This document shows positions 2,212 to 62,217 of a stretch of 64,000 nucleotides of DNA, piece by piece. The position numbers and the translations under genes are program-made. The stretch lies in the sequence record MN695334.1; one strand, given 5' to 3'. Every line of letters begins with the position of its first letter. Within the stretch, counting starts at the first letter, position 1. The notes below the pieces were generated by a model. It was not told where the DNA came from. It worked only from the letters and a program-made list of their open reading frames with translations, and ran no database searches.

Positions 2212-3837
2212 ATGAAACATTCAATATTTCACATATTATCCACTAAGATTTTTAAGCATATTAGATTACCACTTCTCGCTGCCACTATTATAGCTGGCAC
2301 TATATTCGATTATGATAATGGCGCTCAGGCGTCACCTGTAAACATTTCGTCTATTGTCGTTGGTGATGGTGGATTCACCATTAACGGGGATACTCAGTAT
2401 AGTTACAGTGGCTTCAGTGTTTCGGGGGTCGGAGATATCAATGGGGATGGTTTGCTGGATGTATTAGTAGGCGCCCCTGGAAAGGGTGTAAAAATTGGAA
2501 GAGATGTCGGACAGGCTTATGTGGTGTTCGGAAAAAAATCAAAAACACCAACTAACCTACGTGATGTTGCTGCAGGTATTGGTGGATATACCATCATTGG
2601 GCAGAATGGCCTTGACATGGCAGGATTCTCTGTCTCTAGATTAGGTGACGTGAATGGTGACGGTCTGGCCGATGTATTGGTTGGCGCACCATTTAGTGAT
2701 CCGGCTACTGGTGCTAATGCTGGTCGATCCTACGTGGTGTTTGGTCAACGCACAACAAGACCAGTTTTCCTAGCTGATGTTGCTAACGGAGTCGGTGGTT
2801 TCGTGATTAACGGACAATCGGCTGGAGATAGAAGCGGTACTAGTGTTTCTGCGGCTGGTGATGTTAATGGAGATGGCTTCGCGGATTTAATTATCGGCGC
2901 CCCATTCGCAAATGGTGGTGTTGGTCGATCTTATGTCGTGTTTGGAAGTAGAACTCGCACAGCTATTGACCTGTCTAATATTGCTGCTGGTAGGGGTGGT
3001 TTTGTTATCAATGGTGAGTCTATTGAAAATCAAAGTGGAATCAGTGTCACTGGTGCTGGTGATGTGAACGGTGATGGACTTGCTGATCTAGCTGTCGGGG
3101 CTCCTAAAAACAATGGTGGCGATGTCCGAAATGGTCGCTCCTATGTGGTGTTTGGGAGCAGAACTCCAGCGAATGTTAATCTATCCGATATCGCCGCCGG
3201 GAGAGGGGGATTCCGAATTGATGGATCTCAACTATTCAGTTACAGTGGTACGGTTGTCTCTGGTGCTGGTGATATCAACGGAGATGGTTTGGCTGATTTA
3301 CTAGTTGGTACACCTGGAGGTAAACCAAGTGACACCACATATAACGCTGGTCGCACCTATGTAGTTTTTGGTAAAAATACAACCACCCCGGTGCTATTGG
3401 CAGATCTTGACGCTGGTAGGAGTGGAGGATTTGTTATCAATGGTGAAGGGCGTGAAGATGCCTCTGGAAGAAGTGTTGTCGGTTTAGGTGACATAAATCG
3501 TGATGGATTGTCAGACATTGGTATTGGTGCACCAACGGCAAATACCACCAGAGTTGATGCGGGAAAGGCTTATGTCGTATATGGAAAAAAATCTTTTACA
3601 CCCGTTAATCTAGCGACTTTGGCCACCACAAATAGTGGTTTTGTTGTTCTCGGGAAGGCCAGTTTCGACTACACTGGAACCAGTATTGCACCCGCTGGAG
3701 ATGTCAATGGTGATGGGTTACCTGATATACTTGTTGGCGCTATTGGAGGAAATTCACGAGCAAACTCTAGTAATCTAAAGATTCGGGAACTTGGATACAG
3801 GTCAGGGCAGACCTTTGTTATTCTGGGTAAGCCATGA
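2212..3837 (+). CDS. FG-GAP / integrin-alpha-like seven-bladed beta-propeller with putative signal peptide
   Basis: Seven GD(I/V)N(G/R)DGxxD Ca-binding motifs, each followed by (V/I/A)G(A/T)(P/I) and G..YV(V/I)(F/Y/L)G; N-terminal hydrophobic stretch ending in AQA. Confidence 0.9.
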   Translation: MKHSIFHILSTKIFKHIRLPLLAATIIAGTIFDYDNGAQASPVNISSIVVGDGGFTINGDTQYSYSGFSVSGVGDINGDGLLDVLVGAPGKGVKIGRDVGQAYVVFGKKSKTPTNLRDVAAGIGGYTIIGQNGLDMAGFSVSRLGDVNGDGLADVLVGAPFSDPATGANAGRSYVVFGQRTTRPVFLADVANGVGGFVINGQSAGDRSGTSVSAAGDVNGDGFADLIIGAPFANGGVGRSYVVFGSRTRTAIDLSNIAAGRGGFVINGESIENQSGISVTGAGDVNGDGLADLAVGAPKNNGGDVRNGRSYVVFGSRTPANVNLSDIAAGRGGFRIDGSQLFSYSGTVVSGAGDINGDGLADLLVGTPGGKPSDTTYNAGRTYVVFGKNTTTPVLLADLDAGRSGGFVINGEGREDASGRSVVGLGDINRDGLSDIGIGAPTANTTRVDAGKAYVVYGKKSFTPVNLATLATTNSGFVVLGKASFDYTGTSIAPAGDVNGDGLPDILVGAIGGNSRANSSNLKIRELGYRSGQTFVILGKP

Positions 3838-4574
3838 ATATAAAAGATTACCACGACTTGTGCACTGAACTGCTATCCGAGCTTTCTGAACTATATTCAT
3901 TAGTTAATGGTGAATGCCCCTCTCTTCTGGATGAAGATAGTGGGGGAGACGCTAGACTAGATTTAGCGATTGACGACCTAATACCTAGGGCCAAAGCCTT
4001 TCTCTTTGCACCTGAGGCAGTGAATAGGGTATCCATGGCCGCTGAGACGATCACTGACGACCAGGGAACACCATGGCAACAAACCATGAATGGGTCGCTA
4101 TGGGCAAAAGCCTTCTGCTCTATGCATGGGGGTGATGAAGAATTGATGTTAGGTTGGTTTTGTAACGCTATTATGGCGGGGTGGGATCATCACCAATGGC
4201 TACTGGACGACGAAGCCACATTAGCAGGGATGGATGATATGTCGGATGAAGAGATTCTTCATATCTTTGATGTTGCTTGGGGGGAGGATATTCCAGAAAC
4301 GCCTATTCTGGAGCGACCTAATGCTCGATGCATTAGAGGTATTCGTGCCGTCATTGCCCACATTATCCGATCCTCTCCAATTCCAGTGAGCGAGAGATTG
4401 CCTGAGGCGAGCGATTGTGATGCGGAGGGAAAGTGTTGGTGGCGGACGGTAGCGGCAGCGGGAGGTGGAAGCAAACGCTCAGACTACTTCGTGTTCTGGA
4501 CATTCACCGAAAGTTGCCAGACTGCATCACACTGGTTGCCACACTGGGCGCTTCCGTTGGGGGTGAAGTCATGA
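3834..4574 (+). CDS. Mosaic hypothetical protein with C-terminal DUF551-like module
   Basis: C-terminal PIPVSERLP...CWW...SHWLPHWALP resembles the end of 10111-10596. Confidence 0.6.
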   Translation: MNIKDYHDLCTELLSELSELYSLVNGECPSLLDEDSGGDARLDLAIDDLIPRAKAFLFAPEAVNRVSMAAETITDDQGTPWQQTMNGSLWAKAFCSMHGGDEELMLGWFCNAIMAGWDHHQWLLDDEATLAGMDDMSDEEILHIFDVAWGEDIPETPILERPNARCIRGIRAVIAHIIRSSPIPVSERLPEASDCDAEGKCWWRTVAAAGGGSKRSDYFVFWTFTESCQTASHWLPHWALPLGVKS

Positions 4575-9733: not shown

Positions 9734-11650
9734 ATGTTTTATAATATACAAGACAGAAACAGAGCTACAGGTAGAACAACCGCATTACGATTGAGTGCTA
9801 TATCAGAAGCACTATCAAATCCAGGCAAACAGATTGAATTTGTGGATCATTATCCACATACATTCGCATCTGCAAGAGATCATGCCCAAACATTAAGGAA
9901 TGTGATTGACCGCCTTGGACTTTTAAATATCAGAATATGGGTAAGGGGACATGCGGTCTTTCTTGTGAATGAACATGATCCATGGCCGAGAAGTGATGTA
10001 GAAAAAGCCTGGAAAAAACTTGAAGGTTCATATCCGAATATGGATGACTATTGTGATCATTCCTCATTTTACTATTTTTGTATGGGTTATAGCGGAGGAA
10101 AATCAAATAAATGAACCAAACAGAATCAAAGCTTGATTTGTGGCAAATTCTAGCCCCAATTCTTGATGAGTCTATCGCACAATCTCTGCGCGATATGGAT
10201 GATAATGAAGCCGAACCAGATTCATATGATTCAGAAAGACTTCAAGAAGTATATATGGTGTTTCGTGATTTGGCAGACTGGTTTGCTCCTGAAAAATTAC
10301 CATGGGGTGATTCTGCTATTGACCTAAAACGTTTATATTACGCAGAGATACGTGACAAAATTATCAAAGAAGCTGATTCTATCAGGAGAATCATGCACAG
10401 TGTTAATTCAACTCTGGTTCCAATTCCACTTACTGAAAGATCACCAACGGCTCAAGATTTTGATCCATCTAACACATATTCACAATGTTGGTGGTTTCGA
10501 TCAGTTGGAACTTGGAAAGGTTGGGTGCTTGATCAAAAAGAAATCTTTGATACTCATTGGCTTCCATACGATACTTTCCCGATTCCATCAAAATGAATTG
10601 TGTATCAACTATTTTGGAAATGCCCTGAGTGCGATTATTATATAGATGATATATGTAAGAAAAGAATTAGATACCCTATGCCATGTAGATGTGGTAGAAG
10701 CACCGATACATATGTACCTGAAGTTCTTAAACTAACTGAATGTGAAGATGAATAAATCCATTACTGTCGAGCAACTGTTGGCAAATATACAAGAAGCTGC
10801 CAAATTAATCCCAAAAGAACCACCAGGACCTAAACCAGGTCAAACTGTATTGTACCGAGGTGGCGAAATCTTATACTTTAATCAAGCACAACATGATTTA
10901 TTTTTATTCTAATCTAGGCGCAGTTTCATGTGTAATTTGCGCCGCATTGCTGGCTTATCATAATATGCCTGGATGGGGGTGGTTTTTGTTTAGTGGTGTA
11001 TTAATGACAAGTTATGCCAGTAGTAAAGAAACCACAACTGAAGATGATACAGACACAACTATAGAGGAATAAATGACAGACGCCCCGGATGATCGATTAT
11101 CAATCCAATCTAGATTCGGTAACAAATTTTCCACAAAAGATCTGATTCATCGAGCAAGAATTAAACTTGGATACGATTCACCTTAGAGCAGTTCAAAAAT
11201 TGGTACACGATTTTCCAATTAAATCAAAAAATACCTTATGTTATGGACATGACAACAAACGAAATTATGAAAAATATTGATCTCAGTCGCATTACACCTA
11301 GTGCTGATCTAAGAAAAAAATGGAACACAACTTTAAATACTGTTAAGATTAGTCATGTTAGGGAACATTCGATGGTTAACCTTGCATGTGAATATGGTGT
11401 TGAACAGGGGGCACTTGCGGCTATTGAGGCGGTAATCGAATACCTTGAAAGAGATCCTTACTGCCATACAATGATAGACACTGGTGTACCACAACGTATA
11501 CGCAAACATTTCCTACCGCCACCAACTCCCATCGAAAGGTTAGAGGAATCACTTAGTGCTTTGTCACGATATAGTCCAGACTTGGGCTATAGTGATATTC
11601 TCGGTGAGATTGCTATTGCTATCAACGACCTAAAGGCGGCAACTAAATGA
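9734..11650 (+). other. Cluster of small hypothetical ORFs
   Basis: Includes 9734-10114, 10111-10596 (DUF551-like tail), 10860-11072 (two TM segments), 11243-11650. Confidence 0.55.
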
Positions 11651-49479: not shown

Positions 49480-49610
49480 GGTAGATATAATGATAGTGTG
49501 GTAGGTATATATTTAGGATATTTAGGGTATTTTGGACGAATTTGGTATATCAAATATTAAAATTGCATTAGAGTTTTATTATAGGTATATTAGATATTAA
49601 ATTCTTATAC

Positions 49611-49749
49611 TTTTTTAATGTTTATTCTTTTTATTTTTATGATTTTTTAATGTTTATTCCTTTTATTTTGTTTATTATTTTATGATTTTTTAATGTTTAT
49701 TCCTTTTATTTTTATGATTTTTTAATGTTTATTCCTTTTATTTTTATGA
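49611..49749. repeat. Four tandem copies of a 32-bp AT-rich unit
   Basis: TTTTTTAATGTTTATTC(C/T)TTTTATTTTTATGA at 49611, 49643 (+11-nt insert), 49686, 49718. Confidence 0.9.
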
Positions 49750-50027
49750 TTTTTATGTAGCAACCTAGGACCGCAATAACTAACAAAAATATTTTTAATT
49801 ATAAAAAGAAAAAAATTGTAAAAATACCCATAACCAAAAAATAAACATAAAGGCCGTGAGAGGCACCTAGAAGCCCCTATAAGGCATCTCTAACCGCTGT
49901 TAGGTACCCTAGGATGGTCAACCGTATAAGACAGCCTCTGAGGCGATTAGCCAATCATAAAACTGTCCACTCATAAGAAATTTTAGCGTCTTATGTTGTA
50001 TTCTGTATAAGTAATCGAAAGATACAT

Positions 50028-50111
50028 GCATCTGTGGCGGAATTGGTAGACGCAACGGACTTAAAATCCGTAGCCTTTCGAGGCGTGAGAGTTCGAGTCT
50101 CTCCTGATGTA
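50028..50111 (+). tRNA. trnL: tRNA-Leu(TAA), no encoded CCA
   Basis: D-arm GCGGAATTGGTAGACGC, anticodon arm ACGGA-CTTAAAA-TCCGT, T-arm GAGAG-TTCGAGT-CTCTC; no intron. Confidence 0.93.
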
Positions 50112-52096: not shown

Positions 52097-52405
52097 CATA
52101 TTAAATATTAGAATTTCATTAGAATCTCATTAGAGTTTTATAATGGAGTTCTTATTATACTATAATATAATATTGCAGGGTGAGTGACGATCTTTTTTAT
52201 CATAAAGGTTACATCACCTCTCGTTCAATTTTTATATTAAACAAGCATAAGAAGAATTTCTTTTAACTGAAGTCAGTCTAGCAGGTTTTGATGGCATTTG
52301 GGTATAAGCATCGCTTATCTGTCACATCAGCAGGACTTATTGATGAATGGTCGCAGTGGCGCTTTGAGTGTGCTATTCTATGGGAGTCACCAACAAATCC
52401 CGGTC

Positions 52406-53161
52406 ATGCTCAAGTTTTCCTTTGGTAACAGCAAACTTGCTAATGACACTCTGATCTTTAGTCTTCCTGCTGGTCAGTCTTGTCCCGGTGCAGATAAATG
52501 TCTTGCATTTGTGAATATGAATGGGGAAGGAAAGCGATCTATTGTGGATGGTCCACAAATGGAATTTCGTTGTTTTGCTGCTTCTAGTGAGGCAACATAT
52601 CCTCCTGTTTATAATTCTCGTCAGCATAATTGGACTACAATCAAAAATCTTATTAAGAATTTTGGTGTAGGTAAGGCTGGTAGTATGGTTGCAGAGTATA
52701 TTCAATCGATTCGTAAAAAATCTACCAAACTGGTTCGTATTCACGAATCTGGTGATTTTTATTCGGCGGATTACTTTGCGATGTGGATGCATGTTTGTCG
52801 TTTGATTCCTGATCTGAAGTTTTATGCTTATTCTAAGAATCTTTCTATGATTCTTGATTATGGCATGGACATGTTGCCTCAGAATTTCTATCTGACAGCA
52901 TCAAAAGGTGGTAAGTTTGATCACCTGATTGATGAAGGATTCTTTCCACGTTATTCTGTGGTAGTAAAGAATGATGCTGAGGCAGAGGCAATGGGTCTGG
53001 AAGTGGACCATGATGATTCACATTGCTATAAGCAAGATGGGCCATTTGCTCTTCTTGTGCATGGCATTCAGGCGGCTGGAAGTGAATGGGGCAAGGCAAT
53101 TCGTGAGCGTAAGAATAACAAACAGTTCACCGGATATAATAAAAATAAAGTCGCAGCATAG
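52406..53161 (+). CDS. GP88 (mycobacteriophage gene 88)-like protein
   Basis: GNSKL...FSLPAGQSCPGADKC...RCFAAS...VRIHESGDFYS...FYAYSK; likely start ATG 52406. Confidence 0.75.
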   Translation: MLKFSFGNSKLANDTLIFSLPAGQSCPGADKCLAFVNMNGEGKRSIVDGPQMEFRCFAASSEATYPPVYNSRQHNWTTIKNLIKNFGVGKAGSMVAEYIQSIRKKSTKLVRIHESGDFYSADYFAMWMHVCRLIPDLKFYAYSKNLSMILDYGMDMLPQNFYLTASKGGKFDHLIDEGFFPRYSVVVKNDAEAEAMGLEVDHDDSHCYKQDGPFALLVHGIQAAGSEWGKAIRERKNNKQFTGYNKNKVAA

Positions 53162-53254
53162 TATGTGATAACTGTGCCAGTGATACAACTGGCACATAAA
53201 TCTCCCATTCGCTTTTCCTTTCCCGTATATTATTCAAGTAAGCAACTGAAACAC

Positions 53255-54104
53255 ATGAACCGGTCACTCATTGTTGTTCAAATCAAGCCCAAAATGTTTT
53301 GTTCGATTGGACTGCATTGGGAGTATGGTCAAAAAATTGAAGATTGGTTGAATAGTCTGAATCTATCTGAGATTCATGGTCTCATTTCTGTAGGACATCG
53401 ATCCACAATTAAAGAATCTTATCGAGCACTTCCTTATACTTTGCCTGATGTTGATTGTAAGCATTGGACACATAAAACACTAAAGGAAGCAGTTCTTAAC
53501 ATTGAACATAAAACTCTTGCTTATCATAATGGCAAGACATGGAAATTCACTCATAATAATAATTAAATTTTAGGAAGGAGTTTGCCTTAAAAGTTACTCA
53601 ATGTGTAGATGTTAATATAAAGTAGTATGCCTCATTTTTATCGTCTATTGTCGAGGGTTGTTGTTTTAGGAAAGGATTGCCCCTTTCCTTTTTTTTATGT
53701 TTATAAAATTATAAATTTGCAGGGGAATTGTCGATCATTTAATCATAAAGCCTACTTCGGCTCTCCTTTCCTTGTGACATCATTCTAGCACCTTCCAGCG
53801 GCTTCTGTGAGCCTCTGGTGATCAGTGTTGCTTATGAGTCGAATCAGCAATGCTTATGAATAAATGCTTGACTTTGGAATCGTTATGCCTTATTCTATGA
53901 ATGTAGAAACGCATCAGATTCATGAATCAATCATTCTGCATGGCTTCGGATATTGAAACTCGTGCCACGATGTGGGCCGCGATTCATACTGACGGCACAC
54001 CGATTTACGTACAGCCTTGTGAACCACTTCTGTTTGATTCGGTGTGTTTAGCAAGTCTTTATGCAAATCTTCACACTCGCTTCAATTACGATCCTTTTTC
54101 GTAA
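53255..54104 (+). other. Two hypothetical ORFs (53255-53566, 53922-54104)
   Basis: Each sits directly behind its own promoter cassette; 53255 is the in-frame ATG downstream of the -10 at 53226. Confidence 0.6.
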
Positions 54105-54144
54105 TCAAAAAGTTTAATTCTAATTCAACTATTCCTTATTTGTC

Positions 54145-54774
54145 ATGCTTACTCCTATTCAATTCAAGCAAAACTTCTACCAAATGATGAAGGAAATTGA
54201 AGACAAAACTCTTGATGTCCTTTATGAATATGCGGAGGAACTTGCTTCTGAAATTTATCTCCGTGCTCATACACAAATCACTCAATTTCAGTGGAACAAT
54301 CTAGTTAAAACTTGTTCGGTAATTGCGGCCAATACAGATCGCTTTTATATGAACTCATATCATGATGCTTACAGGTCTGAGTGTGGTACAACTCATTGTC
54401 TTGCAGGTTGGTCAATCTCGTTGCTGTTGAAGGATACTAACTATGAGGATTCCCAAGTAGGCAAACTATTGATGGTACTGGAGAATTACACTGCTGACAT
54501 GGAACGATTTTTTTGTGAATATTCCGGTCCGAATAACTCTCAAATTGGTGCATTTTTGTTGTCGGAATATGTAAAGCCTTTCTTTTATATTACCAACAGA
54601 ACTATGTGGAAAGATAATCAACTTGTACTTAACAATACGGCTGAGGAATTGGTTACCAAATATCTCATCAATCCTGTGCTGGAAGAAGCTAAACGTGAAA
54701 GTCATGAATTGACTACTGAAGTACAACAATTCATCGAACGTGCCGGAAACAAAATTGAATGTGGTATTAAATGA
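54145..54774 (+). CDS. CGTxHCxAGW family protein, copy 6
   Basis: CGTTHCLAGWS...LSEYVKPFF. Confidence 0.85.
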   Translation: MLTPIQFKQNFYQMMKEIEDKTLDVLYEYAEELASEIYLRAHTQITQFQWNNLVKTCSVIAANTDRFYMNSYHDAYRSECGTTHCLAGWSISLLLKDTNYEDSQVGKLLMVLENYTADMERFFCEYSGPNNSQIGAFLLSEYVKPFFYITNRTMWKDNQLVLNNTAEELVTKYLINPVLEEAKRESHELTTEVQQFIERAGNKIECGIK

Positions 54775-54815
54775 AATAAAGAATCGGCAAGAATGAATCA
54801 CAATTAAAACAATCG

Positions 54816-54840
54816 GGAGCCAAATTTGGCTCCTTTTTTT
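54816..54840 (+). terminator. Rho-independent terminator
   Basis: Perfect palindrome GGAGCCAAATTTGGCTCC followed by T7; similar hairpins close other cassettes (~53669, 56465, 57052, 57988, 58612). Confidence 0.8.
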
Positions 54841-55043
54841 ATTGTTTATATCTTATAATTCTGCAGGCGAAGTGTCCTGTTTTGTATTATCACGCTTCTG
54901 CGCTTTCCTTGTTTGTTGAATACAGTCTAGCACGGCACAGGCGGCCCCGTGACCAACCCGACCAGTTTTCTAACTGTCCACCACCAGCCCCGGTTGCTAG
55001 TTTCTAGGTTGTATAATAATTATGTCGTCAAGGATTTTCTCTC

Positions 55044-55577
55044 GTGCTTACTCCTCTTGATTTTCGCAACAGTTTTAATAAAATTATGGCAGAAATTGAG
55101 GTGAAAGATCTTCCCGTCAACATTTTTATCCAACAAGAGAATTACAAAAAGATTCTTGCTGATGTAGATAAAACAGATACTTTCACTGAATATCAGTGGA
55201 GGAAGCTGGTCAGAGTTTGCCGGGCGATCAAAGAATATGAAACTCGGTTTTCAATGGACGATTGGCATTATAAAAAAGGTTGCGGAACAACACATTGTCT
55301 GGCTGGTTGGACACTTGCTCTAGAATATGGTGATATCGATATTGATGATATTAATGTGGATGATCGCAGGATGCTTGTTCCTGATGATTATATGAATGAT
55401 GAATATTTGAGCACACCCAAGACTGCTGAGTTTTTTCTATCAAAATATACTCGACCATTCTTTTTCTTCACGAATCGAGTTGATGGTGTTAATAAAGACG
55501 CAGAGAGGCTGGTCATGAAATACTTTATCGAGCCCATTCTTCAAGAAGACGATAAAGATAAGCTCAACAGCTTCTGA
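55044..55577 (+). CDS. CGTxHCxAGW family protein, copy 7
   Basis: CGTTHCLAGWT...LSKYTRPFF. Confidence 0.85.
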   Translation: MLTPLDFRNSFNKIMAEIEVKDLPVNIFIQQENYKKILADVDKTDTFTEYQWRKLVRVCRAIKEYETRFSMDDWHYKKGCGTTHCLAGWTLALEYGDIDIDDINVDDRRMLVPDDYMNDEYLSTPKTAEFFLSKYTRPFFFFTNRVDGVNKDAERLVMKYFIEPILQEDDKDKLNSF

Positions 55578-55663
55578 ACCACTTCAATAACTGTCTACCG
55601 GTAATCACGGTTGCCGGTTTCATTTTCTAGAATAACCAAGTCAACCACGTTTCTTTCGAAAAA

Positions 55664-56095
55664 ATGCTCATCAATCCTCAAGCCATGGAAAATCTGACCA
55701 AAAATGTAGATTGGGCCGAAACGATTCAAGAACTGAATAAGAATAATCCTGCATCTTATGAATCTCTTCTTAATCTTCTGTTTTCTTCAGTTCAACCAGT
55801 TTACAAAATCGAAATCGAACAAGACTACAATCCAGTAAAAACTATTGATTCTCGGTTGATTCGAACTTACGACTTCGTCGTAACTGCTGTTAAAAATACC
55901 GTGAATGGTAGTTGTACCGATAACTCCAAGATCTCCGCAATTAAGGCTCTTCGTTCTGAGTTTGATGTGAATCTCAAGAATGCGAAAGACTGCGTTGAGA
56001 AAATGATGCAAATGTATAAAAATAATCCTGACTGTAGTTTTATGTTTTATTATAAAACCGGTGGTGATCTCGACATTAGCTGCTATGTCCAGTAA
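55664..56095 (+). CDS. Protein with ribosomal bL12 C-terminal-like motif
   Basis: KISAIKALRSEFDVNLKNAKDCVE vs bL12 consensus KIxVIKxVRxxTGLGLKEAKDLVE. Confidence 0.6.
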   Translation: MLINPQAMENLTKNVDWAETIQELNKNNPASYESLLNLLFSSVQPVYKIEIEQDYNPVKTIDSRLIRTYDFVVTAVKNTVNGSCTDNSKISAIKALRSEFDVNLKNAKDCVEKMMQMYKNNPDCSFMFYYKTGGDLDISCYVQ

Positions 56096-56269
56096 AAGCC
56101 TCTAGAAGGCCCTTCTACGCTGAATCATGGGCCATCCTGTCTAGGGTGGCTTTTTCATGCCTTCTAGAGGCTTCTAGAGGCCATGTGCCAATTCTGAAAG
56201 TGCACACAAATCACCTGGCTTCACCGTCAACATGCTGTAGAATAAGGGAGTCCCAGACAAATTCGGATC

Positions 56270-58594
56270 ATGAGTAACAACCTTTATCTGGAAAATGGAT
56301 ACGCTAATCGTCGAGAGTATCTTGATTCTCTTCGAGAAGATTATGGTGATCTGGTTGATGTTTTGATTAGTGTTCTTCCTGCATCGGAAGATTTTGATGG
56401 GTTGATTACTGAACTGGAAGATGCAATGGAGTCGGGATTATATGATGATTTGATCTGATTCTTTACCCCGAGTTTCTTATACTCGGGGTTCGCACTATTC
56501 TTTATAGTGTAACATAACTGCAGGAGAAGTTTCTTATTTTTTATCATAGAGCTTTCCGGCTCTCTTTTTCGTTTGTTGAATATAGTATAATACAGCATAA
56601 GCGGCAGCCGTGAGCACCGTGGGACAGTTCGCTAACTGGCACAAGGACAACCGAGGTTCAGGTTTTCGTGTTCTATACTAATAAAGTCCCAAAGACAACT
56701 GATCATGGCTTACAAGGATTATCGTCCTGAAACTCGCAGCCTGTTCAAGAGACTCAAAGAGCATGATTTCTCTCTGAGCGCCGTCAACAATGGCGAAGAA
56801 TGGGTGAAACTCAGTGATGTCGGTGATAGGGAGTTTCTGGAAGAAACTGTTGCTGCTGATGATGCAGTTGTCACGGTTCGTTATACCGATGGCAAGCGTT
56901 ACAAACTGTACCTGGTTTTCGGAAACTGTCCAGGTGAATTGGTTTGTGATTGTTCGTCTTTTGATCCACTAAGTGTGGTTGTTGATCAACATGCTGATAA
57001 GTGGGAAAATCGCAAACAACCCACACGATGAATTAAAATCAAATAATAAACATCCCCGAAAGGGGATTTATTTTGTATTCTTTATAGTATTATTAAAGTG
57101 CAGGTAAAGTGTCCTGTTTTATGTTATCACGCTTCTGCGCTTTCCTTGTTTGTTGAATACAGTCTAGCACGCCGGAAGCCCAACTGCGAGTCACCGTGGC
57201 CAGTTTTCTGACTGTCCACCAGCAGCCACGGTCGGTGGTTTCGGTGCTCTATGATATCGGAGTAGCAAACAACCGGCCATGAAAAAGTTTTCTGTTACGC
57301 TTCGTGAACATGAAGAATACGGCGAAATTGGCCTAGTTGTAGATACTCAACGGGATTACTTCGAGCCTGCTACATCTGGATTGCAGTGTGCTCACGATAT
57401 AATCGAGCACACCGTAAAACCTCATTATGATGGATATATTGACGAACTAATGGCTCTGGGTGGAGTTATTGCTGGAAGAATTACCTATGGTTGGTCTTTT
57501 AAGTATGGCACAATCAATCTGGATGATATTAAATCAGACATCTCTTCTCTGGCTACTTCTGCTTATCACGAGCAGTGCGATTTCGTGAATGATGAATGCA
57601 AGAATACACTGAAAGATAAAGATTTCGTTCAATCTATCCGAAACATGGTTCGTGATGGATTAATTGAAGCAATGGGAGAATATAATGACGACTACCTTAA
57701 TCCTGTCGTGAATGAGTCCGACTTTCAACAATTAGTGGAAGAGAAGTATAACATAAATCGCATTGTTGCATGGATTTGTAAGGGTTATCAGACATACAAA
57801 AAGAGATTCGCTAACATACAAGAATATACGATTCAACATATTTTCACTCAGATTGAGCGAGTGTGCGATAAATTTATCAAGACTGGAAAAGAGTATCAGC
57901 AAGCTACTTTGTGTGTTGATTTTACCAACGGTCGTGTATATTTACAAGAAGAATATGAAGATGATTATTGATAACAATCAATATCAAAGACTCTGAGATT
58001 GTTATGCTCAGAGTTTTTTTGTATTCTTTATAATGTAACATAACTGCAGGAGAAGTGTCCTGTTTTATGTAATCACGCTTCTGCGCTTTCCTTGTTTGTT
58101 GAATACAGTCTAGCATAGCCACAAGGGAAACGGGGGAATTCATTGATCAGCATTGCTTATCAATTCAATTTCGTTTTATGTAGCAGTTGATACCGTTACA
58201 TGCTTGCGGCATTCAAACCAGTCGGTTATGCTTGGGGAGTCCAAAACAAAAAAGCGTCATGACTTTCACTCTTCCTTCCGTACTGGTTTCGGATACGATT
58301 GAACAGCTTATGAGCCACTTGGCTACAGCTGAGAAAGCAAAAAAAGAAGCTGAGGCAGAATATGAACGGCTGCGTAAAGAATTGAAGGAAATTATGATTG
58401 CTGGGAAAGTAACTACACAAAAAACTGTTTGGGGCACCGTTACTCTATGTGAAGGCCGCAAAAGTGTAGCTTACTCTCAAGCAATTATATTGCGAGAGGC
58501 TAAGTTGAAGGCGGCAAAAGAGATCGAAGAACTAAAAGGTAAGGCTAAAGTCACGCACGGTGAAAAATCAATTCGTGCAACTTGGGTGAAGTGA
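56270..58594 (+). other. Single-gene early cassettes (56270-56458, 56705-57031, 57279-57971, 58259-58594)
   Basis: Each ORF has its own upstream promoter and downstream hairpin. Confidence 0.7.
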
Positions 58595-58865
58595 AATATA
58601 ACTAAAATGACTGAATGGCTGTGGGTGTTATACTCACAGCCATTCTTGTTTGTTATTGTTTATATTATTAAAGGGCAGGAGAAGTGTCCTGATTTATATG
58701 ATTGCGGTCTTCCGCTTTCTTGAATACAGTCTAGCACAGCACAAGCGGCAGCGGCGAGGCATCGTAACAATCTGTAACAATAGAAATTTTATAGTGTCTT
58801 AAGATTTGGACCCGCTGAACCGGTTTCCGATAGTGTAGAATATGAGGGCACCAAACATCAATCCG

Positions 58866-59270
58866 ATGAACACCAAAATCACCGGTCAAGATCTCATCAA
58901 TTATCGGGAACATTGGAAGGCCCAAGGTGCAACCAATGCCGACATTGTTCGTGGTGCAGGTTATATCACGATTCGTAAAGATGGCACTCAGCGGCTAAAC
59001 TTTACTGAATTTTACGAAAACATTCTCATTGCAAGGGGTAGAATGTGGAGAATCACTGTAAACGTAGCCGAAAATACTTCGGCTGGAGCACAACCAATCT
59101 GGAGTGATTCGTTCACCACAAGTAGCCGAAGTGCAAGAAGTGTCGCCCATAAAGTAAGGGCATTGACTCATCTTACTGGGGCTCGTTGTAAGCGAGTCGT
59201 GGAGAATGGCGTGGTGAAACTTTATCCTTACCGTTCGAATCAAATGGTAGCCTACAATCTGCCTGCATGA
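58866..59270 (+). CDS. Cyanobacterial AbrB-like N-terminal domain fused to an unknown C-terminal domain
   Basis: ITGQDLI...DIVRGAGYITIRKDGTQRLNFTEFYENILIARG matches the cyanobacterial/cyanophage AbrB-like pattern. Confidence 0.7.
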   Translation: MNTKITGQDLINYREHWKAQGATNADIVRGAGYITIRKDGTQRLNFTEFYENILIARGRMWRITVNVAENTSAGAQPIWSDSFTTSSRSARSVAHKVRALTHLTGARCKRVVENGVVKLYPYRSNQMVAYNLPA

Positions 59271-61796: not shown

Positions 61797-62217
61797 TATA
61801 GNAGAATGGTTAATCAGAGTCTCTGAAGTTCGTCCCGAACTCGGAGGCTTTTCTATATGTCCTTTTGCCAAAAAAGCAAAATATAAGATATTGAATATCG
61901 ATATTGATAAAATTTATCCTATTGAAAACTATGACGTTATCATTTATGTGATACAAGAAGAGAACTTAGATATCATTAATTCATGGACTCAATTTTATAA
62001 TCAAAAATATTCGGAATGGCTTTTCTTTGAGGACTGTGCTTCTTATGATACATTCATAAATGGCGTTCAGACAAATAATGACCTACACAATTTAATTCTA
62101 GGGCAACCTAAAGAAGAACTTAAAAAATTTAGAGAAATATTGAAGAAGACGAATTACTACTCCTATTGGTCTGAAGAATACTATAACGAAATTATGAGTT
62201 CGGCTTCCGAATCATAG
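61768..62217 (+). CDS. Conserved cyanophage hypothetical protein (start uncertain)
   Basis: EWLIRVSEVRPELGGFSICPFAK; probable TTG start near 61768. Confidence 0.55.
   Translation: MNTEDQVRIDIXEWLIRVSEVRPELGGFSICPFAKKAKYKILNIDIDKIYPIENYDVIIYVIQEENLDIINSWTQFYNQKYSEWLFFEDCASYDTFINGVQTNNDLHNLILGQPKEELKKFREILKKTNYYSYWSEEYYNEIMSSASES

Follow-up and report, generated by a model that had tools for sequence, protein, structure and literature searches.

A Conserved Non-Coding Element Between the Gene Cassettes of Cyanophage B3 and Its Relatives, with a Putative Antisense Small RNA Gene

Introduction

What occupies the spacers between the small single-gene cassettes of a T4-like cyanophage, and could any of it be transcribed? 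The question is raised by a stretch of 64,000 nucleotides (the window, hereafter) of Synechococcus phage B3 (MN695334.1; 244,930 bp; Kyanoviridae), where a non-coding module of about 120 bp occurs seven times in the spacers between single-gene cassettes, from position 52153 to position 58756. The window, which corresponds to positions 62001–126000 of the B3 record (window position = record position minus 62000), is 100% identical to B3 and to its near-twin B23. We report that this module belongs to a real, conserved and previously unannotated non-coding family, and that, judging from the comparison of its members, it very probably carries an active promoter on the strand opposite to the genes. 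The module had been noticed earlier from the letters of the window, and this original prediction offered two readings: a multi-copy early small RNA, or a set of R-loop-primed origins of replication.

B3 is a T4-like cyanomyovirus, which encodes gp55, gp33, gp45, RegA and the baseplate proteins gp25/gp6. Its genome has a G+C content of about 35% and nearly all its genes lie on the plus strand. The region of interest is a long run of small genes of unknown function ending at the baseplate genes gp25/gp6, and the cassette genes have no known function, except gp242 that matches the Pfam family GP88. No feature is annotated under the seven copies of the module, apart from the 38-amino-acid gp252, whose annotated frame overlaps both a terminator and copy 7. 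T4-like cyanophages have very few known non-coding RNAs; a 2010 review (PMC2984593) names CfrI of cyanophage S-PM2 as the earliest antisense RNA to be described from a T4-like phage.

Results

Seven Copies of the Element in B3

Exactly seven copies of the element were found by profile search, both in the 64-kb window and in the whole B3 genome, with nhmmer E-values of 1e-28 to 7e-11 (Table 1), and the covariance model detected no further copy elsewhere in B3. The 17-mer core of the element gave five matches in the window at up to three mismatches, versus 0.26 expected. The GCAGG anchor (CCTGC on the minus strand) stands at the seven positions where the original prediction had placed it; the minus-strand −10 boxes (TGCTAGACT in five copies, TGCTAGAAT in copy 2 and TATACT in copy 4) and the five hairpin variants read as it had listed them, and its start sites match the CA found five bases past each −10 box. 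The 44-mer ATCACGCTTCTGCGCTTTCCTTGTTTGTTGAATACAGTCTAGCA is indeed identical at 54889, 57126 and 58072, and copies 3, 5 and 6 share 44–105 bp of complete or near-complete identity.

Other details of the original prediction had to be amended. The distance from the reverse −10 box to the operator-like motif, given as 30–33 bp, is 33–35 bp in five copies and 23 bp in copy 1, and the motif itself, described as one palindrome, is of two kinds. Each cassette had been thought to look bidirectional, which is too broad: at the junctions gp246/gp247 and gp247/gp248, a terminator and a promoter are present and the element is absent.

The Element Defines a Conserved Family in Related Phages

The relatives were retrieved as IMG/VR contigs (numbered with the prefix L) through an exact 17-mer and a gapped pattern. 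The profile searches returned 105 hits; these amount to 91 distinct copies, which are spread over B3, B23 and about 20 viral contigs. The covariance model found 94 copies in the 536 kb of DNA searched. The related loci are syntenic with B3 108–125.5 kb, and in all of them the element occupies this same variable region ahead of the baseplate genes; copy number and cassette content differ between relatives. The proteins encoded at these loci are 45–60% identical to those of B3 (91% in contig L005), whereas the blocks of the element stay more than 85–95% identical across the relatives, which argues for selection on specific positions and not for recent copying.

Concerning orientation, the promoter-like side of the element opposes the flanking genes in all 24 loci, with the exception of one inverted copy found in the related contigs L006 and L002. 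In L006 this inverted copy lies head to head with another copy, retains its UAUAAA block and has no adjoining terminator. Together with the two B3 junctions devoid of the element, it supports the proposal that the element is an autonomous add-on unit.

Beyond these relatives, the element was found only in B3 and B23 among 50,697 records of isolated phages, and two core patterns remained unmatched in 185,579 bacterial and archaeal species (one genome each). A host origin, a host small RNA and a CRISPR-repeat mimic were rejected on the basis of the latter search; in addition, the stem sequence differs between copies, which is a poor fit to the mimicry of one repeat. The possibility, raised with the original prediction, that the element belongs to an already described RNA family was not supported by Rfam 15, with no match at E ≤ 1 on any copy of the window (45–64 kb) or of four related loci.

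Two leader insertions were observed in the family. One, in a sub-family (Table 1), is about 30 nt long and folds into an additional hairpin, CAAGG..CCTTG. The other, of about 37 nt, is found at the same place of the leader in copy 1 of B3 and is unrelated to the former.

A Putative Promoter on the Strand Opposite to the Genes

The −10 box of the element fits TAnnnT in 88 of the 91 copies, the conserved positions being T1, A2 and T6 while the inner bases vary, and a CA lies five bases past it in 78 copies. What stands upstream varies. A TTGACn sequence is found 17 bp upstream of the −10 box in 22 copies; an NtcA box (GTA-N8-TAC) occurs 22–23 bp upstream of the TAnnnT in 18 copies, versus about 0.04 expected by chance; and the TGn of an extended −10 box is present in 50 copies, overlapping both other classes and standing alone in 30. 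The B3 copies are of the extended −10 type, except copy 4 that has no TGn, and the NtcA box is absent from all seven. On the minus strand of copy 2, a consensus promoter scan flagged CTCACA-18-TAGAAT with its TG. The convergence of three upstream designs on one start is hard to explain unless transcription is selected there, and the minus-strand promoter of the original prediction is thus backed by a 91-copy comparison.

Further downstream, the block that reads TATAAA(G/C/A)AA on the minus strand was considered as a T4-type late promoter. This was rejected; the late genes of B3 carry NATAAATA, from which the block differs at −10.

The Predicted RNA Combines a Covarying Hairpin with Near-Invariant Unpaired Motifs

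The predicted RNA starts with a U-poor, purine-rich leader of about 17 nt, followed by a G+C hairpin of 4–6 bp with a purine loop. Next come an unpaired tail with the near-invariant motifs AU.A.AAA.C, G..AC and CCUGC, and an A/U-rich stretch containing UAUAAA. The first 25 nt comprise 46% A, 30% G, 19% C and 4.7% U (76% purine), whereas roughly one-third of the genome, at 35% G+C, is T. The first U appears at a median position of +26. Being nearly free of U, the leader has no start codon. The longest open reading frames (ORFs) starting in the first 70 nt of copies 1 to 7 have 3, 39, 15, 0, 68, 9 and 21 codons, respectively, and they are shorter than 10 codons in 67 of the 91 family members. 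No reading frame is thus conserved downstream of the predicted start, as previously noticed, and a small-peptide function was rejected on this ground. The stretch ACAGGACACUUCUCCUGC of the element, with its flanks, is usable as a probe target.

The hairpin occurs as 39 distinct stem-loop combinations, in which all the 4-nt loops consist of purines only. In the covariance-model alignment, 99.3% of 303 cells are paired versus 80.0 ± 1.5% in shuffles (0/500), and the covariation score is 0.546 versus 0.194 in shuffles (0/500), these figures being supportive and not a proof since related sequences were aligned to fit the structure. When the register was slid as a control, at most 59% of the cells were paired. 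The outer pair is GC in 41 cases, AU in 23 and GU in 11, and the inner pair is CG in 40, GC in 31, UA in 3 and AU in 1. Such compensating changes at both pairs are what one expects of the covarying hairpin that was originally described.

Which strand folds can be approached through the wobble pairs. Adjoining the Watson-Crick core, the antisense strand presents 11 G·U pairs (3.1 expected) and 2 A·C; all 11 copies with a T on the 3′ side of the hairpin have a G on the 5′ side, and in five of these copies the helix continues with another pair past the G·U. As a control, 66 distinct terminators of upstream genes were read on the same antisense strand, where they present 38 A·C and 6 G·U, as expected if terminators fold on the gene strand. 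These opposite biases indicate that the hairpin and the neighbouring terminators belong to opposite strands, in agreement with the earlier claim that G·U pairing occurs on the minus strand only.

Regarding the 3′ end of the RNA, a second hairpin, CAGGA/UCCUG, was rejected as a conserved helix or terminator stem, as it is paired in 74.2% versus 73.2% in shuffles; as read from the alignment, CCUGC is a conserved sequence motif and not part of a helix. The likely candidates are the U-rich stretch after CCUGC, which would yield an RNA of about 60 nt, and the reverse face of the upstream terminator, which would yield one of 105–120 nt; read-through into the upstream gene is a further candidate. The reverse face of the upstream terminator is terminator-like for copies 3 and 5, and the terminator preceding copy 3, which scores on the minus strand too, possibly provides the 3′ end of its antisense RNA.

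The Element Accompanies the Gain and Loss of Cassettes

The promoter-early stem-loop (PeSL) cassettes known in T4-type phages act as recombination linkers (Arbiol et al. 2010, PMC2839356; Comeau et al. 2014, PMC4122927). The B3 spacers resemble them in several respects: they are intergenic modules that recur in a hyperplastic region rich in small genes without known function, a region that in B3 is syntenic with that of its relatives and variable in content; they present, in B3 and relatives, a putative stem-loop terminator and then a sigma-70-like promoter for the next gene; and their copies are alike enough to recombine, an indel between close relatives being bounded by copies. This indel was found in contig L005 (93–97% identical to B3), which holds an extra cassette of about 490 bp at 3446–3931, corresponding to window 57076–57175, with two flanking copies of the element versus one in B3. 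In this pairwise alignment the repeated DNA marks cassette gain or loss, the signature of PeSLs, and the earlier idea that the repeats allow cassette shuffling is well in line with it. L005 also holds an insert of about 600 bp at 429–1029, after gp245 (window 54774).

PeSLs as described comprise one promoter and one terminator, whereas the B3 spacer adds an optional unit of about 120 bp with a converging promoter. Neither an antisense promoter, nor a conserved transcribed hairpin, nor a cyanophage case is described in PMC2839356 and PMC4122927; a study of cyanophage S-PM2 reports no dense PeSLs (PMC4503421), and our literature searches on small RNAs of cyanophages, or on antisense promoters at the ends of cassettes, yielded nothing specific. 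An integron attC-like site was also considered in view of the single-gene cassettes and the strand-specific folding; it was not retained, since there are no paired R/L inverted repeats and the hairpin has only 4–6 bp.

Discussion

A PeSL-Like Module That May Also Hold an Antisense Small RNA Gene

On balance, we favour the proposal that the element is a PeSL-like inter-cassette module that also holds an autonomous antisense small RNA gene. The spacer would act as a PeSL cassette, with a terminator for the upstream gene and then a host-type promoter for the next gene, while the reverse-facing sigma-70-type promoter would start a small RNA at the fixed CA. The many copies would thereby yield one common RNA species early in infection, which in some relatives would be placed under NtcA, i.e., under the control of the nitrogen status. 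The RNA is probably a discrete functional molecule, whose invariant unpaired segment and hairpin would act on one shared partner, protein or RNA; separately, the repeated DNA would serve as a homology patch for the gain and loss of cassettes. We infer transcription, the ends of the RNA, its trans action and its partner from sequence alone. The trans action, which we propose tentatively, is favoured by the invariance of the unpaired motifs next to a stem whose changes are compensated, in a unit that is optional and autonomous. The multi-copy early small RNA of the original prediction fits the pattern of conservation and appears to be its best reading; what it lacked is the PeSL concept and the NtcA and −35 versions of the promoter seen in relatives, the element and its coordinates being sound.

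A bolder version, which we consider doubtful, is that of a new class of phage small RNAs, NtcA-responsive in some phages, which the host polymerase would transcribe as early as the first minutes of infection. Each genome would hold up to a dozen or more genes for them, nearly identical to one another, and the purine-loop hairpin and invariant CCUGC tail would titrate or redirect one host or phage protein. Candidate partners would be a ribonuclease, an RNA chaperone, a defence sensor or the polymerase itself. In a still more unusual variant, the folded strand would be single-stranded DNA, offering a site to a recombination or priming enzyme that moves cassettes.

Several observations weigh against the small RNA proposal, besides the dependence of the pair counts on a fitted alignment of related sequences. 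RNAalifold predicts no structure from a plain MAFFT alignment, which is not structure-guided; we attribute this to register shifts of the short stem between sub-families, and used the covariance-model alignment instead. Beyond its hairpin of 4–6 bp, the RNA is predicted to be almost unstructured, and G·T pairs are tolerated in single-stranded DNA, so that the folded antisense strand could be DNA and not RNA. At the candidate 3′ ends, the CAGGA..UCCUG pairing before the U-rich stretch shows no double changes, and the reverse side of the upstream terminators is only mildly U-rich across the family (3.4 of 9 nt). As to possible RNA targets, GCAGG, the complement of CCUGC, is not in excess at the start sites of phage genes (2 seen versus 6.4 expected), and the duplex energies with phage start regions are no better than with random windows. 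A generic promoter scan of this A+T-rich region is not enriched, with 21 promoters found versus 21.1 expected from shuffles. Finally, on the gene strand a T-rich tract follows the hairpin, so that a secondary role as back-up terminator is possible.

Other Explanations of the Element

A cis-acting insulator would dispense with any trans partner. Its reverse promoter would fire into the upstream terminator, and leakage between cassettes would be curbed either by converging polymerases or by pairing of the antisense and read-through RNAs followed by RNase III cleavage. The geometry is suitable, as the element lies directly downstream of the terminator and faces it, two upstream terminators score as bidirectional, and any read-through RNA would necessarily be complementary to the antisense RNA; moreover, transcriptional interference by antisense RNA is documented in cyanobacteria (PMC13283749). 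Cis pairing is sequence-independent, yet CCUGC and AU.A.AAA.C are near-invariant across genomes with about 50% identical proteins, and such invariant unpaired motifs favour a trans action since a cis-only insulator needs no fixed sequence. With two B3 junctions that lack the element and an inverted copy, in L006 and L002, that faces no terminator, we regard an insulator as unlikely. We give still less credit to a module operating solely at the DNA level, i.e., a recombination linker with back-up forward terminators, maintained by gene conversion, with incidental promoter features and no functional RNA. Gene conversion would leave unexplained the conserved T1, A2 and T6 of the −10 box and the CA at +1, and nothing in this explanation accounts for the −35 and NtcA boxes present at canonical spacing on the minus strand of different sub-families, for the compensating stem changes, or for a G·U association restricted to the minus strand and opposite to that of true forward terminators. 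It does account for the long identities among copies 3, 5 and 6 and for the cassette indel bounded by two copies, and it is consistent with the linker role known for PeSLs. On the plus strand, several GCAGG..CCTG hairpins with a T-rich tail are also terminator-like, the covarying hairpin being so only in copy 4, and in copies 3, 5 and 6 the plus-strand stem of the latter is reduced to 3 bp and an A·C mismatch.

The T4 origins oriF(uvsY) and oriG(34) consist of a promoter and an unwinding element. The second reading of the original prediction likens the element to them: the purine-rich transcript would stay hybridised, the A+T stretch would unwind and the RNA would prime DNA synthesis, or else the R-loops would initiate recombination. 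A promoter followed by a tract of about 40 bp of almost pure A+T, and a transcript start whose richness in purines and poverty in U would favour a stable RNA:DNA hybrid, agree with this scheme. T4 origins, however, are few, stand at fixed loci and use MotA middle promoters, whereas the seven B3 copies are clustered within 6.6 kb of a dispensable, variable region and have host-type promoters (sigma-70 or NtcA in the family); cyanomyoviruses have neither motA nor asiA (PMC2984593). The copy number and the cassette content vary between relatives, the cumulative GC skew has no inflection at the locus, A+T richness is ordinary at 35% G+C, and the covarying hairpin and CCUGC would find no explanation; we therefore regard origins as highly improbable. 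Hardly any weight, the least of all, is given to a leader or attenuator of the forward transcript, in which the conserved TATTCTTTATAnT just past the terminator would be a forward −10 box and the element its 5′ leader. On the plus strand, the conserved TATAnT and TATTCT are each compatible with TAnnnT, and a T-rich tract follows the hairpin; cassette promoters in relatives likewise use TATTCT as their −10 box. Against this stand the lack of a consistent −35 box or TGn upstream of TATTCTTTATAnT, the proximal promoter that each cassette already possesses, the G·U pairs that place the hairpin on the other strand, and the inverted copy, in which the block travels with the antisense unit. A forward promoter in TATTCTTTATAnT is thus not supported, and TATTCTTTATAnT remains a conserved block. 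Altogether, of the features first proposed, the minus-strand promoter, the hairpin, the non-coding nature and the shuffling find support in the comparison of 91 members, and it is the R-loop origins that appear unlikely.

Comparison with Other Known Systems

Similarly to the RNA predicted in B3, CfrI is a non-coding RNA (about 225 nt) of a T4-like cyanophage, transcribed in the orientation opposite to that of the adjacent genes (Millard et al. 2010, as relayed in PMC2984593). In this relayed account, CfrI is a single-copy RNA overlapping psbA and a homing endonuclease gene, whereas the B3 element is multi-copy and its conserved part is intergenic, with no coding overlap. As for nitrogen control, cyanobacteria possess NtcA-activated promoters and NtcA-dependent small RNAs, such as the NsiR family (NtcA regulon, PMC5714215). 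The 18 copies with an NtcA box show the canonical activation layout ahead of a predicted short non-coding RNA, and differ in this respect from the seven B3 copies, which have extended −10 promoters instead; no Rfam host small RNA was matched, and the B3 element has no sequence similarity to any Rfam family.

The hairpin also bears a loose resemblance to boxB of the lambda nut site, a small G+C stem with a purine-rich loop located tens of nt past an early promoter. The stem of the element has 4–6 bp, and its loops of 4–6 nt have no fixed GNRNA pattern. We know of no N-like protein in T4-like phages.

If the small RNA proposal is correct, a multi-copy early RNA would be conserved across a clade of large cyanomyoviruses, more so than the surrounding proteins, and part of the family would tie phage non-coding transcription to NtcA, the nitrogen regulator of the host. 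The PeSL model of cassette shuffling would be extended to cyanophages, with a linker that can hold a gene of its own. A defined set of start sites and a covariance model are also available for the annotation of uncultured phage genomes.

Neighbouring Terminators, Promoters and Operator-Like Motifs

The terminator scan gave 20 terminator-like sites versus 5.0 expected. The terminators of cassette genes upstream of copies 4 and 7 (56469–56492 and 58613–58645), and those of many related loci, have a long conserved loop, GTTTCTTATAC or a near variant, on stems that covary; this loop motif resembles the TATTCTTTATA block located 3′ of the terminator. Apart from that of gp244, the forward promoters of the B3 cassettes have −10 boxes with weak −35 regions, and in relatives TTGACn-N17-TAnnnT occurs at the same place in front of cassette genes. 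The operator-like motifs sit in a G+C-rich stretch (46–64%) between the divergent promoters, and both types recur in relatives, e.g., as CCAGTT..AACTGGCACAAGG and GATAAG-N5-CTTATC, which suggests that one or two dimeric regulators might control both promoters.

Table 1. Copies of the element and neighbouring predicted features (window numbering, except for the contigs named in the last row).
Feature	Position	Strand	−10 box, hairpin or motif	Predicted +1	CCTGC	Search result	Remarks
Copy 1	52153–52301	−	TAGACT (52275–52280)	52268	52175–52179	nhmmer E = 7e-11	Divergent; leader insertion of ~37 nt
Hairpin of copy 1	52204–52221	−	AGAGGT-GATGTA-ACCTTT
Copy 2	53688–53810	−	TGCTAGAAT (53782–53787)	53775	53719–53723	nhmmer E = 1e-15
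Hairpin of copy 2	53747–53764	−	AGAGCC-GAAGTA-GGCTTT				Internal G·U pair
Copy 3	54832–54951	−	TGCTAGACT (54924–54929)	54917	54863–54867	nhmmer E = 8e-25; covariance model 79.1 bits
Hairpin of copy 3	54892–54903	−	GCGC-AGAA-GCGU
Copy 4	56496–56609	−	TATACT (56584–56589)	56577	56520–56524	nhmmer E = 5e-19; covariance model 64.2 bits	No TGn
Hairpin of copy 4	56548–56563	−	AGAGC-CGGAAA-GCUCU
Copy 5	57068–57189	−	TGCTAGACT (57161–57166)	57154	57100–57104	nhmmer E = 1e-28; covariance model 84.3 bits
Hairpin of copy 5	57129–57140	−	GCGC-AGAA-GCGU
Copy 6	58013–58135	−	TGCTAGACT (58107–58112)	58100	58046–58050	nhmmer E = 2e-26; covariance model 83.5 bits
Hairpin of copy 6	58075–58086	−	GCGC-AGAA-GCGU
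Copy 7	58647–58756	−	TGCTAGACT (58728–58733)	58721	58675–58679	nhmmer E = 3e-21; covariance model 60.5 bits	Leader 8 nt shorter
Hairpin of copy 7	58704–58715	−	GCGG-AAGA-CCGC
Terminator of the gene upstream of copy 2	53668–53689	+				Terminator scan
Terminator of gp245, upstream of copy 3	54815–54834	+				Terminator scan	Terminator-like on both strands
Terminator of gp248, upstream of copy 4	56469–56492	+	Loop GTTTCTTATAC			Terminator scan
Terminator of gp249, upstream of copy 5	57052–57067	+				Terminator scan	Terminator-like on both strands
Terminator hairpin of gp250, upstream of copy 6	57990–58014	+					Read from the sequence
Terminator of gp251, upstream of copy 7	58613–58645	+				Terminator scan	Inside annotated gp252
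Forward sigma-70-type promoter of gp244	53868–53896	+	TTGACT-17-TATTCT			Promoter scan
Other forward −10 boxes	52374–52379, 55012–55017, 56674–56679, 57250–57255, 58227–58232, 58836–58841	+
Operator-like palindrome	54963–54976, 56625–56638, 57201–57214		CAGTT-N4-AACTG				Between divergent promoters (54963: copy 3/gp246)
Operator-like motif of the second type	52304, 52326, 53821, 53843, 58146		AT(A/C)AG-N5-CTTAT
Leader-insertion sub-family	L008:1259–1360, L010:1504–1605, L006:6357–6458, L022:3197–3298, L024:4150–4251

In relatives, the 5′ untranslated regions of many cassette genes carry a short leader, AGTC(A/G)NC...GGGA....TCCC-ATG, in which base pairing is possible between the Shine-Dalgarno-like GGGA and the TCCC that immediately precedes the start codon.

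Other Observations on the Genome

The annotation of two genes next to copy 7 deserves a revision. A terminator hairpin and copy 7 both overlap the annotated gp252 (38 amino acids; window 58607–58723), which is unlikely to be a true gene. As annotated, gp253 starts (window 58842) directly 3′ of a TAGAAT −10 box, and comparison with relatives suggests that the true start may be the in-frame ATG at 58866. Upstream of these genes, gp245 (54145–54774) and gp246 (55044–55577) resemble diverged paralogues, with a gene start region common to both.

Across the whole B3 genome, the cumulative GC skew climbs steadily from about 2 kb to about 242 kb, and TATAAATA occurs 18 times on the plus strand and twice on the minus strand. 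In contig L006, at 11120–11415, a tRNA (68.8 bits) adjoins a candidate group I intron, whose score of 47.9 bits falls just below the gathering score of 50. In the window, A+T-rich tandem repeats with the unit TTTTATGATTTTTTAATGTTTATTCC, whose copies start 11–43 nt apart, occupy positions 49573–49754, just upstream of the tRNA-Leu(TAA) gene at 50028–50111.

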